DNA of 64,000 nt from Paragordius varius (Eukaryota; Animalia; Nematomorpha): assembly GCA_964247055.1 (NCBI GenBank), contig OZ176054.1, forward strand, positions 13,020,001 to 13,084,000. Reading direction: 5' to 3'. The position numbers and the translations under genes were made by a program. The notes under the pieces are model-generated. The model was not told where the DNA came from and made no database searches. It saw only the letters and a program-made list of their open reading frames with translations. Every line of letters begins with the position of its first letter. The first letter of the stretch is position 1. Shown here one piece after another: positions 12,600 through 21,584 of this stretch.

Positions 12600-15516
12600 T
12601 ATTCCTAAATTTCATTTTTTCCACAGTTTTTATTAACCATGAAATATTTGTCTGAAATGGAGAATTATCAAACCTTAGTGTTATGTTCAGGACATCCGCA
12701 CGGTTTATTCCCAAACATTTGGAATTATGGAACATGTGAAAAAACGGGAAAATTAGGTAATAAACTCTTTTATAAAATTGACAAAAAATTTATTTTTTTT
12801 GATCAGTTGAAAATTGAATACGTACACTATTTTTAAACTTATGCTAACATAAAGAAATACAGCCAAGTTATCCGCGTTTGATTATTACAAATGGCCTGGT
12901 GCTACCAACATGTCAGGAACCAGAAAAGCAGCATGATAGAGCCTACGTTTCAGATTACGAGCGATTATTTGGTTTGAATGTTAGCCAATATGGACAAATG
13001 ACAGCTGGGAGTTTTTGTTACATTGGACCTCAGGGTATAGTCCATGGCACAACTCTAACTTTGCTTAACATAGCTCGAACAAATTTCGGCGTCCAGAATG
13101 TGACTGATCTGGTGGGTAAGGTAACACATAATATTACATACAATATGGATACCTTTAAATATGTTTCAAGTGTGGGTATTGGAACCGGAATTATTTTGGG
13201 GGTGTTTAGGAGAAATATTTTACAAGCTGTCATAAAAGAAAAAAGTTTTTGTAAATTTTTATCATTAAAATTTTTAAACTTACAATTAATATTCATTTCA
13301 TTTCATAGCAAGAGTATTGTAATTATTATAGAGAAGCAAATATTTTGGCCTAAATTATATTTTTGCAGCTATTTTTTCAGATTCCTATCAAAAAAGTTGT
13401 GACATTGGCGGTTTGACCATAATTTTAATAATCAAAACCAGTTATAACCATTGCCCACATATGTTTAGTCGAAGATATAAAAAATTTAACATAAACTAAC
13501 GCCAAAAATGATTTCAGGTTTTAATTCCTTTAAATTTTCTAATGGCAAAAAAATGAAATAGCTTTTTATGAAAAAAAAAATCTTTAGGTATTTGTATCAA
13601 GCGGATTGGGTGGAATGAGTGGAGCTCAAGCTAAGGCTTGCAAAATCTTGTCATGTTTTGGGCTTATTGCTGAAGTAAATTTTATTGCCCCTTAAAAATA
13701 TATATATTTATATATCATGATAAGTTAACTTACCAAAATTTTAGTCATTTAGTAGATGTTGTATGACTCTTGAGGTATAATTTATTTTATTAACAATATT
13801 CATTTAGATAAATAGTGTGACAGCACAAAAAAGATTGAATCAAGGATGGTTGGATGAAGTGAGCGATGACTTGGATTTCTGTATTAACCAAATACGACAA
13901 TATAAACGGGATCTTATAAGCAAATCTATAGCATACTGTGGAAACATTGTGGATCCTCTGGTAAAAATGGGAAAAATTTGTTCTTTTATGTACAAAACGT
14001 ACATGCATTTTTGCTTTATAGCCAAAAAATAATGTTTAGGGCAAAATTGGCAGAACTATATGAAGAAACCGGTGAAAAATTAGTAGATTTTGGTTCTGAC
14101 CAAACCTCTCTTCACAATCCCTACAATGGTGGATATTATCCGGTCGGTTATAGCTGGTTCGAGGCGAATCAGCTATTAGCGACAAAGCCTGAACGGTTTC
14201 AGAGGGAAGTTTGTCAAAGTTTGATACAGCAAGTCACGCATATCAATAGGTTTTATCCTAATCCTTATCTAATAATTTTATGAAATCAAGTTTATTTCTC
14301 CTATTAGAATGACAGAAATGACTGGGTTAGTATTTTTTGATTATGGCAATGCTTTTTTGCTTGAAGCTGCAAAAGCTGGAGCACCAATTTACAAAAATAG
14401 CGATATAGCTTGCAATAATTTTGGAGATACAAATCAAATTGGCGATTCAGTTGAATGGATATATAGATACCCATCCTATGTGGAAAATGTAATGGGTGAA
14501 ATTTTCGCATTTGGGTTTGGGTCTTTTCGTTGGGTATGTATGAGTCAGGATTCGAAAGATCTTGCTTATACCGATAAACTTGCGCTTTCCATCCTTAGGG
14601 AGATTATGAATGAACTAGATTCTAAAATACTTCAGTGCCAACAAAAACAAGAGCAGATGCGTAGCAAAGTTGACCTTTATGCCCGAATAAAATCTTACTA
14701 TGTCGATAATTGCTTTTGGATGGAACACATCATTTCTCAACCTCATGTGGGATACCTCACTGTAGGATCACTGGCCCGGATCCTCTATTCGGACGTTCAA
14801 GGGCGAATACGACTGGCTTGTGCCTTCAATAAGGCCATCGCAGATGGACACATAACGCAACCGATTGTGTGTAGTCGAGACCATCATGATGTTTCTGGGG
14901 CTGATAGCCCTTGGCGGGAAACAGCTAACATTCGAGACGGTTCCAACATGTGCATAGACATGTCCATTCAAAATGTCTTGGGAAACGCGGCCAGAGGAGC
15001 AACTTGGGTAGCCCTTCACAATGGCGGAGGAGTTGGTTGGAACCGTGCAAGCAATAATGGATTAGGTCTTGTGTTAGATGGACAACCGGAAACCGAACAA
15101 CGCATAAAGAATGTTATGATGTGGGATGTATTGAATGGTATGGTACGGAGATGTTGGTCTAATGCTTATAACTATAGCAAAAATGAAATTTCTCTCTCCG
15201 AAAAACGTGGGACATCATTGCCCTTAAGTGAGAAAACGACGTATTACAATGATCTTATAAAGAATTATTTGCAAGAACTTCAAACGGATATCAAGGGCTT
15301 AAAAATAACTTTACCCTTTGGTGAATAAATCAGAGGAAACTTTATTCAAAAAGATATATGTTTATTTATTTGTTTGTTACAATATATATTATATATGATA
15401 ATAATTAATTGCCATATTATTATAAATACTTTGATGTCATCTATAGGTGTTTAAATAATTGACTAATGGTTTTTATTCTTTTTGCCAAAACAATCACAGA
15501 TACTTCCTTTATAAGA

Positions 15517-16489
15517 TTATGTTTTATTGTCGAAATGACAATTGTCATATTTGGAATTTTGGCGTGCGACATATTTTTCGAATTGGAGTTTCCAATCAAC
15601 GATATATTTTGTTTTCCAATCATTGAAGTGTGCTTTCCATTGGATTTCTAGATCACTTAGATCTTCTATTGACAAAAATATATTAGTTAAAAAACATATT
15701 GTCAAATAATATCAAACAAATTCGTTAATCGAATCTGGTTTTATAAAAATATCGACTTACGTGTAGCTAAAGCAAGATCGGGCATAAATTCATTCCAAAA
15801 TGCGCACTCTTTTATACGCGGACCTCGACCAACGTCAAATGCATCGATTGCAATATTCAAATATTCTCTATTATGGGCAGTGTGGATGGGCCATTGTATA
15901 TCGGACCAGGTTCCATCATCGTTTATGTTTGGATTTCTATTTTTTTAAGAAAAACGAAGGATAATTGAAAATTTTTTGGTTAATGGTCATATAGTCTATT
16001 AAAAAATATTATTATACCCAGTTTTAGCAAAATTGGTCCAGAATCGCATCATGAGCCAGCTTAGTTCAATTTCTTTGGGTTTATATCCCTTTGCAGGATC
16101 TAACGGTTCCCCAAATATATAATTGATTTCATCAGCATGCATGACGCCCATCCAAGATGGCCAGGGGTGAGTCGATGATCGGTGAGTATAATAGTATTTG
16201 AACACATTTGCCCCAGATTGGGTGTAGATGAAGGCGCCCATATTGACCCCACAGGTAATAATCTCCGACACTTTTGTCGAACGCATCTAACATTTTCTTG
16301 GGGTCCGAGGGATCCTCCCAATGAGTATACTCATAGAGTATGGCTTTTCGACCAATTTGATTGAATTTCGGAAATAATTCGGGTAAGGCTTTAGCAAAAG
16401 CGTGTCGATGAACGGTCACCGCCTTTTCTAACGGGATAAAGAGATTCGTTAGCTGATAAATGTTAAAATATGTGCCCTCGTCGAAATTT
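15517..16489 (-). pseudogene. ACHE: Acetylcholinesterase 3' fragment, unit 1
   Basis: Begins at NFDEGTYF and lacks the signal peptide and the GESAG serine. A 5-nt deletion in the exon 2 remnant (tattac[tttac]ctgtggg) shifts the frame. Exons 3-4 encode a protein identical to the full gene. Confidence 0.92.
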
Positions 16490-17034
16490 AATATGGGTCT
16501 CCGCAACTCAGAGATTTTAAGTTAAAATTAAATCTTATATTTCAAAAAGTAATTTCTATATCATTTAAAGCGTTTTTAAAATTCCTTGTCCGTATTTGAG
16601 AATCATAAATTAGAATTAAGTAAGAATACAAATGTTTTTTTAATTATCTAATAATATCTATATATGATAACACAAAGGAACATTTAATTAAAATAAATTC
16701 AATCTCTGGTAATATTAGATAATTATTTTTAATAAAAAAAAGATTTATATAGCAATACAATAAATAAATTTTGGCAATTATTATTGTGGTACACATGTCT
16801 TATTCATAGTAGCGTGTGGCATTAAACAATATTAGACCATAAAAGAATAAAAAAATGTTTTTAAAAAAAGGAATATTTATAGGTTTATATAATTAGGTAA
16901 TGTAATGGTAAATAATGATTGGTTATGTTTCGTAATAACAGTTGTTAAAATCCGTAATAAAAAACGATAAAGGAATATTAATAGAATTAAACGAAAGTAT
17001 AAATAAAAATTATAAACGATATGTGAAACCCTTC

Positions 17035-17100
17035 GTCAATAGTAATTGCAGACTAGTTTCGTGCTTGTTAGCACTCATCAGTACGACACAACTATTTGAC
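17035..17100 (-). ncRNA. Minimal type I hammerhead ribozyme, left arm
   Basis: Minus strand reads gtcaaatagttgtgTCGTA-CTGATGA-GTGCT aaca AGCAC-GAAA-CTAGTC-TGCAA ttactattgac. The core is complete, stem II is a perfect 5 bp, stem III is palindromic ACTAGT with a GUC site, and stem I has one mismatch. Confidence 0.8.
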
Positions 17101-17232
17101 TTGGGGTTTTACATTTCGATTTTGTATATATATCCAACTTTGCGATTTTGGTATAATTGCAGTTGATTATACGAATTTAAATTAAATTTAATGGAATTAT
17201 TGCAAAGTTAAATCGATATGTGAAAACCACAA

Positions 17233-17298
17233 GTCAAATAGTTGTGTCGTACTGATGAGTGCTAACAAAAACGAAACTAGTCTGCGATTACTATTGAC
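17233..17298 (+). ncRNA. Minimal type I hammerhead ribozyme, right arm
   Basis: gtcaaatagttgtgTCGTA-CTGATGA-GTGCTAACAAAAAC-GAAA-CTAGTC-TGCGA ttactattgac. The core is complete and stem I pairs fully (TCGTA/TGCGA with one G-U), but stem II is weakened by GC->AA. Predicted cleavage after C17282. Confidence 0.7.
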
Positions 17299-17587
17299 GA
17301 AGGGTTTAACATATCGTTTATTTTTATTTATACTTTCAATTCTATTTAATTATTCTTTATCGTTATATTACGGATTTTAACAACTGTTATTACAAAAACA
17401 TAACCAATCCGTTCATTACCATTATATATCTATACATTGTTTTTACACACCTGTTTCAATACAAAGTAAGTTTATGTGGCGTTAAAAGTATAATGCAAAT
17501 GTTTCAAAATCGAGAATTTTTTTAAACAATAATTTTATTTATTTCAAATTACATCACAGAATAGAGGACATTAAATGGATCCATAAT

Positions 17588-20500
17588 TCAATCATTAGAA
17601 TTTTGTGGCCTAAAACAAATACATAAATTTGTCATGAAGGGTGATGTGTTTGATTTAGTTTTCGATTTTTTGACATTTTTATTGTTGTTTTCTCCAAATT
17701 GATGTTTGGGGCCTTCTACAGGAGTCTTGAATTTAACGCGTGATCCAATATTATCTTCTTGACTATAAAAAATATTCAAAAAAAATTCCTATAAAATTAG
17801 AGATCGGAACCGTCATGAACCAATACATGGTTTTAGGATTTCCAATAAAGCTTTATTCTTTAAGTTATGTCACATTGTGTTAACATACGGTATAAATTGA
17901 GATTATACGGACACTTAAATATATAGGCAAATCTTTTTTTAAAAGAACGCTATACTGTTAACCTGATTTTTTTAAAATATAAACCATTGTTTGTAAAAGG
18001 AAAAGAAATAAACAACTAAATTTTTTCCTAGTAATATTACAAACATGCTTTTTTTCATTTCTCATTTAGAATATTTTTAATATTTATTTCAATTATTTAC
18101 ATCTGACAACTTGTATTGATCGAAATATCCATACTTTAAATAAATTCAATTATTGTTGAATTATAATTCCAATATTAAAAGAATTATGTATAAATTGTAA
18201 TTAAATAATTTATATAGGAAAATTAGGGTTTACAAAAGTATGTCTTTTTACCAAAAAGCCTGTATTTAAATTTCACAATTTGTGTGTATTAATTTTTACT
18301 GCATATTTCTAAATCTAAATAACCGAACCATTTTCGGCAAAAAAACTATTCCGAATCCCATAAACGATCCCACTTTCCAATCTCAGAATAAAAATCAATT
18401 AATAGTATTAAAATTTTGAATGACTTTTTATTTTCCTTAAAAACTTATATTTAACTAAATGCGATTTTACTAGTGTATCATTTAGATTGAATAAGGGATG
18501 CTCATTGCTAAATTTTAACTTATTGTCCATTTAAAAATAGAGATAAAATTCAAATCATCATAAATGATTCCTATCCATATACTCATTTTTCCAATATACG
18601 TCCATTTTTATCAATTTTATTTAAAAATCCCATTTACAAAATATAAGCATTTATATACATTCATACCTTACAAGCTCATCACTTTTCATTGGATGGTAGG
18701 AGGGAAAACCTGATTCGAGTCCCCCCACACTCCGATCTAACATAACAGCGCTTGAAGTGAAATCTTCAAATCCGGATTCTTTTTTAGCATGCATTTTCTG
18801 TTGCTGTTGTCTTTTATTGGCAAAAAAATCCATGTAATTTTCATCATGTCCAACCATATTGTTGTCATTCATGTTTTGCCCCATTAAATTTTTATTTACA
18901 GGCATTACTGGCCATGCTAAATCGCTCGATGCCGATTGACCTATTCGTTTTTCATCTAAACCCTGTTTTTGTTTTATAATTTCAAATGAAAATCTTACGA
19001 AAGTATATTTAATTTTTGTTATAGTTAATTATCCAATAATTACTCTTAATTAGATAATCGGATTAAAATTGTTTTATAAGTTGGAAAGCAAAGTGTTTAG
19101 ATAGGACTACTAGTTAGAGATTGGATATATTAGTGTGCCCTAGTTTACAGACTATTAAGTTGGGCAATAATTAAATAGAAAAAAATATATTCAAAGGGCT
19201 TCGAACCGAAAATATATGAAACCAAAACTGAATTCCTGAGTTTTCGACAAAACCGGTTTCGTTGAGTTCAAGAACCTCCCCGGTTACCTTTTTAAATTCC
19301 CAGTTCTATTTTCACCTTATTTAAACCGGTTCGAAGCCCTGATTAAAGACATTTTTTAGCTTACCACATTTTGCATATCTTGTTTCACATCATCGGCATA
19401 GTAATAGGCGGAAGAAGAAATGTTAGATGGTTTTGTTTCCATATTGGTTGTTGATATTTCTGGCGAGGGAGGTAATTTCCCACTCCAATCAAACATGTAA
19501 TCATATTCCCAACCATAATTTTGCAATAATGTTTCAAATAACTCTTTAAGGTAGGCATAATCTGGCGTTTCGACAAAATCAAGGCCTCTGGCATACCGAA
19601 CCAAAATTTTGAATTCTTCGGGCAAACCCAAACATAGAGTATCCGGATCAATATCTCGTTTCATTTCAGCAATCTTACGGTACTTTTGTTTGGAGGATTC
19701 GGTTTTGATTAACTTTAAGCCTGGACTTGTGGATATTGCATCAAAAATATATATTAGATTTTGGATAAAATTTATATGAAAAAATTAAGATTATACGGAA
19801 AAAACCTAAAAATATAAAGATAAATATTTTTTTCTCACTTTTTTAATCATGAATTTGTGAATTTTTAATAATTGTTAACGATTGCAAAGTATGAGATAGA
19901 ATATATATTGATAACACAATTAATTACATTTTTTTATATTTTGTATATAAAAATTTATAGATTTAAAAAAGAATGGTTGTCTTTTAAAAAAATATTTTTG
20001 CCTTTATATTTTTTCATTTTGTCCGTATAGTTTCAGTTTTTACTGTATATGTGAATAAATATTTACCTTGCCAAGGCAAGGAACCCTTTAGAAAATATAG
20101 GAACATGTAGGCTAGTCCTTCAAGATCATCCCTTCGACTCTGTTCTATTCCAAAATGCGTGTTAACGGACATATATCGGGCAGTTCCAGTCAAGGGTTTC
20201 TGTTCGCGGTTTATGTGTTTACCTGATATACGATATGAGTTGACATAAAAATTTAAATTTTTATTTCATTAAAGAGTTACAGTAAAAATTGAAATTATAC
20301 ATACAAAACATAAAAACATATTTACAACTTTTTTTTAAAACACAACCATACTTTTTTAAACCGTTAGTTTTCCCACATAAACTATTTAATTTGATAAAAC
20401 AATAACTGTGTATCCAATTTACATGCCTATTTCAGATTTTGTGGTTTTTAAAACAATGAGTTTAAATAAATCAAGGATTAAAAAGTATGGTCGTTTTTTA

Positions 20501-21584
20501 AAAAAATTAGAAGTCTTTACGTTTTAGCGTTTTGTCCGCATAACTTATTTCATTTTTACTGTAAATTTTGTATAAATTTATACCATTTTTATCAATGTAT
20601 TCTTTGGCTAATCCAAAATCAACGATCCATATAATTCCCTCAGTACCGTTAGCCCGTTTTCCAATCAAAAAATTTTCTGGCTTAACATCCCGATAAACTA
20701 ACCCATAGTAATGTATAAATTCGATTCGATTTATCATTTGTATAGCAATCATAATCACTGTTTTAAGACTAAACTGTTTATTGCAGTACAGAAATAGGTC
20801 TTGAAGACAGGGTCCTAACAAGTCCATCACCATAACGCGATAGGATCCACAGTGACCAAAATAATATACGCGGGGTATACCTTCGGCATATATCCCATAC
20901 CTAAAAATAGAAATTGTTAAGAAAGAAAAAAAGTCTTAATTGCAGTAAAAATTAAATTAAATCAAATATAAAAGACTACCAACCGCCATACTTTTCCTTA
21001 GTTTTTATAAATACTTATAGTTTTGGGTAAATTTGGAATAGAAATGTAAATTAGTAACACTCTCAATTATACATGAAAATCTTAACAATTAAACTGTATA
21101 GCTTAAAACATTTGTCTGTCTTTATAAAAAATATTTTTCTTTACGCTTAGTCACCTATTTTATTTATAGTGTGATATAAAATCCAAAATTTTCGATTATT
21201 TCTGCAAGTTATTACGTAACGTTAATACCTTTCATCCTGGTGCAGTCGACTGTACAATTCATATTCCCGTTTTAGTTGAGGAATTTCAGCATTTCCAGCC
21301 TCAATCTTTATGGCAGCTAAAGTGTTTGTAGCTATATGGATACAATATCGCAATTCACCGAACGTACCCGAACCAATGTGCTGAGCTATTTGATATAAAT
21401 TTGGGTTATTTTTTATATTTGTGGTTCCGTTTGATTTTGAAAAACGATCCACACCAACTATACGACCCTGTAATTTGTCTTTTCCGCCACCATGGTGCGT
21501 TTCTGAGGAATTGATATTAACGCTATTATTGGAATGTTTAACCCCTATGTTATAATAGGGGTCCTCCGTTTTCCCGGGACTCAT
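17588..21584 (-). CDS. CSNK1G: Casein kinase I gamma (gilgamesh-like), copy 2; intact, 551 aa
   Basis: Exons 21584-21229, 20900-20584, 20222-20067, 19720-19365, 18962-18667 and 17762-17588 are all GT-AG, phase-consistent and total 1656 nt. Gamma-type motifs are [22 protein letters not shown] and EQSRRDDLE, with a C-terminal cysteine motif (NLCICFRP). Confidence 0.9.

Follow-up and report, generated by a model that had tools for sequence, protein, structure and literature searches.

Insertions of Penelope-like elements (PLEs) are frequently 5'-truncated, form partial tandems (pseudo-long terminal repeats, pseudo-LTRs) and can carry an inverted 5'-truncated copy adjacent to their 5' end (Craig et al. 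2021, PMC8557442). [quoted passage not shown] Metazoan type I hammerheads have a helix I of 6 bp, a helix II of 4 bp and a helix III of 1–2 bp with a small palindromic loop (Cervera & de la Pena 2014, PMC4209133); they are poor as monomers, an active dimer being possible when two copies are in tandem, and the same study described, in Schistosoma, dual hammerheads that lie on opposite strands at a distance of about 100–700 bp (PMC4209133). Animal non-LTR retrozymes have been defined (Cervera & de la Pena 2020, PMC7229834) as AT-rich elements of 150–450 bp without open reading frames (ORFs), with type I hammerheads, target-site duplications (TSDs) of more than 4 bp and circular RNA, and retrozyme-like repeats were noted in several invertebrate phyla. 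A preprint on Xenopus (Li, Clavereau & Pollet 2026, 10.64898/2026.07.22.740005) describes retrozymes that resemble PLE pseudo-LTRs. In this literature, the link between retrozymes and PLEs has so far been argued from co-occurrence and pseudo-LTR similarity. Here we analysed a palindrome with two hammerhead motifs in the nematomorph Paragordius varius, located at 16903–17424 of a stretch of 64,000 nucleotides (assembly GCA_964247055.1, contig OZ176054.1, positions 13,020,001 to 13,084,000 of the forward strand; hereafter the window). We conclude that this palindrome very probably arose by Penelope-type retrotransposition, the mobile element being a small ORF-less repeat with a hammerhead, of non-LTR retrozyme-like kind, that we refer to as unit A.

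All coordinates are window positions and strands are relative to the forward strand; the genome searched comprised 110.5 Mb. The arm-to-arm alignment delimited an inverted repeat of 522 bp, which corrects the limits of 16898–17426 given in a preliminary description of this DNA. The central observation of that description, a palindrome with two outward-reading hammerheads, was borne out by the repeat search, the arm alignment and direct reading of the core. The repeat search recovered arms at 17005–17110 and 17223–17328 (92% complementarity), plus outer segments. The two arms are joined 5'-to-5' at about 17200 (17198–17203), with truncation points at unit positions 130/234 by BLAST and at about 155/210 by more careful alignment, and the outer ends of the composite correspond to the sharp family 3' terminus ...CCATTA (Table 1). 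The only ORFs listed inside the element were of 74 aa and 41 aa, and the GC content of the window was about 28%. The RNA of the 522 nt folded at -277.5 kcal/mol (shuffled sequences, -84.6 +/- 5.2), with a predicted hairpin of about 220 bp. The left flank (16867–16887) and the interior of the left arm (16969–16989) also share a direct repeat of 21 nt at 86% identity, which may be an AT-rich chance match or a further degenerate unit fragment outside the palindrome.

Table 1. Features of the palindromic locus, its neighbourhood and related elements elsewhere in the genome
Feature	Position	Strand	Description
Composite insertion	16903..17424	.	Two 5'-truncated unit A copies, head-to-head, 3' ends (unit position 453) outward
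Left arm	16903..17200	-	Unit A ~155-453; 93.0% identity to family majority
Right arm	17203..17424	+	Unit A ~210-453, 13-nt internal deletion; 96.4% identity to family majority
Left hammerhead	17045..17087	-	Core and helices II/III 17051-17081 identical to family 31-mer, 0 mismatches (G000:C5:13037051-13037081)
Right hammerhead	17246..17288	+	Core 17252-17282 intact, helix I perfect, helix II 3' strand AGCAC -> AAAAC
Extended helix-I hairpin, left copy	17021..17114	-	-29.7 kcal/mol, z = -4.2
Extended helix-I hairpin, right copy	17218..17312	+	-23.3 kcal/mol, z = -2.6
Urocanase	12878-15328	+	Urocanase_C, 1.4e-64
Carboxylesterase / AChE-like C-terminal fragment	15999-16506	-	COesterase 398-475 of 515 at 16002-16286
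CK1-like kinase, several exons	18651-21584	-	Pkinase at 20510-20833
Apparently intact autonomous PLE	L059 2615-6454 (G000:C6:305614-309453); also L060, L032-L039		RVT_1 + GIY-YIG, 743 aa
Family B hammerhead repeat	L055 1440-1960 (G000:C5:3207163-3207683); also L053, L054, L056-L058		

We detected the full type I core in both arms, read directly and aligned to the Rfam consensus: C3, U4, G5, A6, N7, G8, A9, G12, A13, A14, A15.1, U16.1, C17 and the G10.1-C11.1 pair. The left ribozyme runs from 17081 to 17051 on the minus strand as CUGAUGA-GUGCUAACAAGCAC-GAAA-CUAG-UC, and it is predicted to be cut on the 3' side of C17, between 17051 and 17050; cleavage of the right one is predicted between 17282 and 17283. 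Helix I comprises 6 bp and then an internal loop, helix II 5 bp, and helix III a single A-U pair with the palindromic loop CUAG; the topology is that of type I, with helix I open and three helices round the core. Helix I is extended as GUCAA-A-UAGU / ACUA-UUGAC and on into GUGAAACCC / GGGUUUCAC (CGAUAUGUGAAACCC / GGGUUUCACAUAUCG), which places the ribozyme at the tip of a hairpin of about 95 nt, weaker in the right copy because of the helix II mutations. In the left arm helix II is perfect (GUGCU/AGCAC) and helix I has A in place of G on its 3' strand, which gives one A.C mismatch; in the right arm helix I is perfect and helix II has AA in place of GC on its 3' strand, which gives two mismatches. 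The core of each arm, the palindromic ACUAGU helix III, the extended stem I and both predicted cleavage sites agreed on direct reading with what had been proposed. The accompanying label of minimal type I hammerheads was correct as to type I and loose as to minimal, since the layout is the canonical metazoan one and distinct from the minimal hammerhead ribozyme (min-HHR) without helix III of Cervera & de la Pena 2014.

With up to 3 mismatches allowed, the 31-mer comprising the core and helices II and III was found 220 times genome-wide; at least 100 of these occurrences were perfect, and the reversed-pattern control gave 0; the motif is therefore no chance match. A canonical general hammerhead pattern recovered two unrelated singletons only in the genome and missed this family (family A), because just 3 nt of helix III separate CGAAA from GTC in it. 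The genome search with the whole element yielded 436 candidates and 137 scored matches, most of which consisted of one arm only together with sequence absent from the window. Aligned copies showed a 5' extension past the window junction and a sharp terminus ...CCGTTCATTACCATTA (sense), without a poly(A) or simple-repeat tail. Unit A, as defined by these copies, is an ORF-less, multi-copy repeat of about 444–453 bp with a sharp left boundary; the ribozyme core occupies unit positions 276–306 and the 3' end is at 453. It was found solo and in head-to-tail arrays (with a period of 444 in L008, 2.4 copies, and of 453 in L025) as well as in inverted pairs. Upstream of full units there are short fragments, truncated at their 5' side, that end at unit positions of about 315–357, where the extended helix-I hairpin has its 3' foot; this would fit frequent halts of reverse transcription at the helix-I stem.

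We then considered the orientation and limits of neighbouring copies; places were taken from the first 100 matches of each search, and the pair counts given here and below are lower bounds. Among the matches listed, family A copies within 1 kb of each other formed 14 divergent (-,+) pairs and 5 tandem links, with 0 convergent pairs. We mapped 16 inverted composites on the unit, and all 16 represented a different pair of 5' truncations (e.g. 158/223, 228/110, 142/277, 164/168 and 260/92), which indicates an independent origin of each composite; some of them run on into full tandem units. In 12 of the 16 loci the complete composite lies between direct repeats of flanking DNA with 12–16 matched bases, compared with a mean of 6.85 and a maximum of 12 in mismatched-locus controls, for which left and right flanks were taken from different loci. 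The TSDs were variable in length, about 10–16 bp, and could be read directly at loci such as those with ATACTTTTCTTG, TATACTTTTTA, AAATTTAATATTG and TCAATTCCCT. The two arms of most composites differ at the 3' end: one extends to unit position 453 and the other ends about 30 nt short (420–429).

These patterns bear on the idea that the palindrome itself is mobile, that is, a foldback DNA transposon or an element like a miniature inverted-repeat transposable element (MITE), moved by a cut-and-paste transposase that recognises its terminal inverted repeats (TIRs). Long near-perfect TIRs and many palindromic loci are what such an element would show, but its TIRs and junction should be constant and its TSD of fixed length, whereas junctions and arm lengths differ at each palindromic locus, TSD length varies as given above, and one arm is usually without the last 30 nt or so, which makes the ends of the would-be TIRs inconstant. 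Unit A also occurs outside palindromes, solo and in the arrays of 444-bp period, and the divergent orientation, with no convergent pair among the matches listed, is expected if 3' ends always point outward. We consider a transposon of this kind extremely unlikely. Of the earlier suggestion of a MITE-like non-autonomous family, the non-autonomous family is supported, unit A being ORF-less and multi-copy, but the MITE-like nature is not: the palindrome has its own junction at each locus and is not the mobile unit. The family did show the Penelope-type features of 5' truncation, partial tandems, an inverted 5'-truncated neighbour and 3' ends outward.

Autonomous PLEs are present in the same genome. 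GIY-YIG matches were located in long open frames with the Pfam domains RVT_1 and GIY-YIG, the ORFs measuring 606–613 aa in the short loci and 743 aa, from a TTG start, in the longer locus. The copies are 96–100% identical at the protein level, and for this reason the family looks recently active. Among the matches listed, PLE copies included head-to-head pairs, with 4 divergent and 0 convergent pairs, and a 38-nt 3' tail was present on some copies only (e.g. on one arm of the L038/L039 pair). The 3' untranslated region (UTR) of the PLE contains a hammerhead-like motif that is invariant and has U and A, respectively, at its core positions 3 and 8 (L039, about 1906–1945); the unit A hammerhead differs from it. 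Unit A has no reverse transcriptase (RT) or GIY-YIG ORF and such ORFs are found elsewhere in the genome, so it is at most a non-autonomous dependant. The earlier link of the hammerheads to Penelope-like elements is supported, as they are motifs of the Penelope and retrozyme world.

A second, decayed PLE family, with 31–34% protein identity to the first, was found near L040. At 406–545 of this locus (G000:C7:6699-6838) we observed unit A 309–453, which starts 2 nt past the predicted cleavage site; the fragment lies about 7 kb from the contig end and adjoins the decayed PLE and a tandem-repeat ORF. This fragment was the sole match when a partner element was sought by sequence, and it is not a terminal repeat of the decayed PLE.

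We also identified a second hammerhead repeat family (family B). Its helices I, II and III read GUGUGA/UCACAC, GUCC/GGAC and A-CGCG-U, respectively, and its motif likewise caps a long hairpin formed by helix I. Its Rfam Hammerhead_1 scores were 30–33 bits, just below the threshold of 34, and its pairs among the matches listed were 7 divergent and 0 convergent. By direct reading, families A and B, whose motifs need not be homologous, are alike in architecture; where they differ in helix I, helix II or the loop of helix III, the changes are paired, which may support the fold.

The TSDs of 10–16 bp and the frequent 5' truncation would also fit target-primed reverse transcription, and unit A could then be a SINE-like element (short interspersed element) moved by a LINE (long interspersed element), with the inversion produced by twin priming. 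Such an origin is very unlikely: the 3' end lacks a poly(A) or simple-repeat tail, twin priming gives adjacent non-overlapping segments whereas both arms here span one 3' region, partial tandems and the one-sided tail of about 30 nt are Penelope hallmarks (PMC8557442), and a resident PLE shows the identical pattern.

For the Penelope-type origin, we propose that the RNA of the unit would be reverse-transcribed at a staggered chromosomal break, with RT and GIY-YIG endonuclease supplied in trans, presumably by the resident PLE or by another one. Two cDNAs, primed at or near the 3' end of the RNA and both stopping before its 5' end, would be joined 5'-to-5', and the outcome would be unequal arms with the 3' ends, and so the ribozymes, directed outward. 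In the life cycle of the element, the putatively active ribozyme would process multimeric transcripts of tandem copies, in which two sense copies could pair via the palindromic ACUAGU and form an extended helix III. The preliminary description held that these hammerheads cleave best as dimers; the ACUAGU layout has indeed been linked to dimers (PMC4209133), but the transcript of an inverted pair cannot dimerise in this way.

Several results weigh against this interpretation, or against parts of it. At gathering thresholds no Rfam match was obtained within the window, and no Rfam hammerhead model reached its gathering score for the window, for a less-mutated family copy or for family B. The sub-threshold scores were 22.9 bits with HH9 in the left arm (threshold 52), 18.7 bits with Hammerhead_1 in the right arm (threshold 34) and 26.7 bits with HH9 in the less-mutated copy (threshold 52), in which all core positions were aligned. 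The low scores are mostly explained by the very short helix III. The absence of any covariance-model hit had been named beforehand as a result that would speak against the ribozymes, and matches that are all sub-threshold fall clearly on neither side; the copy number speaks more strongly against a chance match. Within the family we found no covariation, the copies being too similar and the stem II variants being single changes only. No in vivo cleavage footprint was seen either: the 5' ends of copies were not clustered at the cleavage site, the truncation points of composites were scattered, and the 31-mer downstream was no commoner than the ribozyme 31-mer (171 vs 220). Unit A showed no nucleotide similarity to the autonomous PLE, either around the GIY-YIG domain of that element or in two full-length loci of 8.5 kb, and trans-mobilisation would thus follow from architecture only. 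At the window locus itself, the best match in the TSD search was of 7 bases, which is the control level, and both arms have the full 3' end, unlike most sister composites. In favour of the interpretation, the ribozyme 31-mer was the least variable part of the unit in 45 sampled copies (variant cells 0.65%, as against about 2.6% away from the hairpin; Fisher p = 6e-7), with a p-value that overstates independence because the sample consists of the best-scoring copies and shared variants are counted repeatedly. Perfect copies genome-wide numbered at least 100 for the ribozyme 31-mer and 77 for the adjacent downstream 31-mer, although ribozyme-bearing 5'-truncated copies must include the downstream segment. 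This sequence pattern suggests that an intact ribozyme may be needed in source copies.

RNAcofold of two 43-nt ribozymes gave a wholly intermolecular duplex, which was uninformative, and a literature search on the exact ribozyme sequence found no paper.

The copy in the window is an old, dead insertion. Both of its arms are less similar to the family majority (Table 1) than the median of the other copies (98.5%); they are 93.1% identical to each other and have 3 variants relative to the majority in common. By analogy with the sister composites, and given these three shared variants, the window composite likely arose in a single event. The change in helix I (left, unit position 310) and those in helix II (right, unit positions 293–294) are private to each arm, and as private mutations in a copy older than most they represent decay. 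Complementary defects are thus present in the two arms as had been stated, but not as a design, and the proposal of a built-in choice between cleavage and hairpin finds no support in such a decaying copy. On a transcript of the window element one ribozyme would be sense and the other antisense, which makes the dimer mode unavailable. With private helix mutations, a single sense ribozyme and a competing hairpin of about 220 bp as predicted by folding, local self-cleavage at the window would be expected to be weak or absent.

The same hairpin raises the possibility that the inverted pair is now a source of double-stranded RNA or small RNAs that silence the family, a role compatible with a Penelope-type origin. 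The predicted duplex is 92% paired, read-through from the upstream kinase gene would be possible, and at least 14 similar loci exist; we nevertheless regard this role as unlikely, since there is no sign of selection on pairing and the arms have diverged by about 7%. Sub-threshold Rfam microRNA matches were rejected as artefacts, as they are far below threshold and merely reflect the long hairpin.

The element lies between the CK1-like kinase exons (upstream) and the carboxylesterase fragment (downstream), both on the minus strand (Table 1; host exons were searched singly by reference). The left ribozyme is sense to the kinase gene, as the preliminary description had noted. A host-domesticated ribozyme could therefore be imagined, in which the left hammerhead cuts CK1-like read-through or 3'-UTR RNA and thereby sets a 3' end or uncouples the carboxylesterase fragment. 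The strand and the position of the element between the two genes fit this idea and the left core is intact, but left helix I has a private mismatch, the copy evolves like a decaying repeat, and monomeric cleavage by a lone sense ribozyme is expected to be inefficient when helix III has just 1 bp (PMC4209133). On such a transcript the ribozyme would moreover be locked in the duplex with the antisense arm, and about 220 other copies are located at unrelated scattered sites. Domestication is in our view highly improbable. More generally, it is very unlikely that head-to-head composites are functional modules whose read-through transcription would act, whether through ribozyme-cut RNA, hairpin small RNAs that restrain the family, or local trimming of kinase transcripts.

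We compared the Penelope-type product proposed here with described systems. Like animal non-LTR retrozymes, unit A is short, ORF-less and AT-rich, and its type I hammerhead combines a 6-bp helix I and a short helix II with a helix III of 1 bp that has a palindromic loop; unit A is found both singly and as head-to-tail multimers, has TSDs of more than 4 bp and shares its genome with PLEs. At the family level it is a short, ORF-less, low-GC repeat with a type I hammerhead that is also found as tandem copies. Unlike retrozyme tandem arrays, the window locus is an inverted pair; for TSD-bounded head-to-head composites and a one-sided tail we found no description in the consulted portions of the retrozyme papers PMC7229834 and 10.64898/2026.07.22.740005. 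Unit A also differs from the Xenopus retrozymes in that no similarity to a terminus of the resident PLE was found. It resembles PLE insertions (Evgen'ev & Arkhipova 2005; PMC8557442; PMC4209133) in its 5' truncation, partial tandems, inverted copy at the 5' end and tail at one end, 30–40 bp long in PLEs, as well as in having a hammerhead in the terminal repeat; unlike PLEs, it lacks an RT/GIY-YIG ORF and has a canonical type I hammerhead, not a min-HHR. Newt satellite 2, Schistosoma Sm-alpha and cave-cricket pDo500, as cited in PMC7229834, are similarly short non-coding repeats with type I hammerheads and a weak helix III that favours multimeric transcripts; in contrast to these classical satellites, unit A has another sequence and host, is mainly dispersed, forms PLE-type composites and does not build long arrays.

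The window element is of a known type, an animal non-LTR retrozyme or Penelope-dependent element, and as one dead repeat copy the locus itself is of little import; its main value is at the family level. The family offers about 220 young copies (median 98.5% to the majority), clear TSDs, a strict orientation rule, a one-sided tail and an apparently intact PLE in the same genome. A reading that is more modest than functional modules but better supported is that a retrozyme-like family and a co-resident PLE sharing its insertion signature provide direct structural evidence for retrozyme integration via PLE machinery. The unit A data set is usable for studying the way in which inverted and tandem structures arise during Penelope-type reverse transcription, and it could test whether animal retrozymes are non-autonomous dependants of PLEs.

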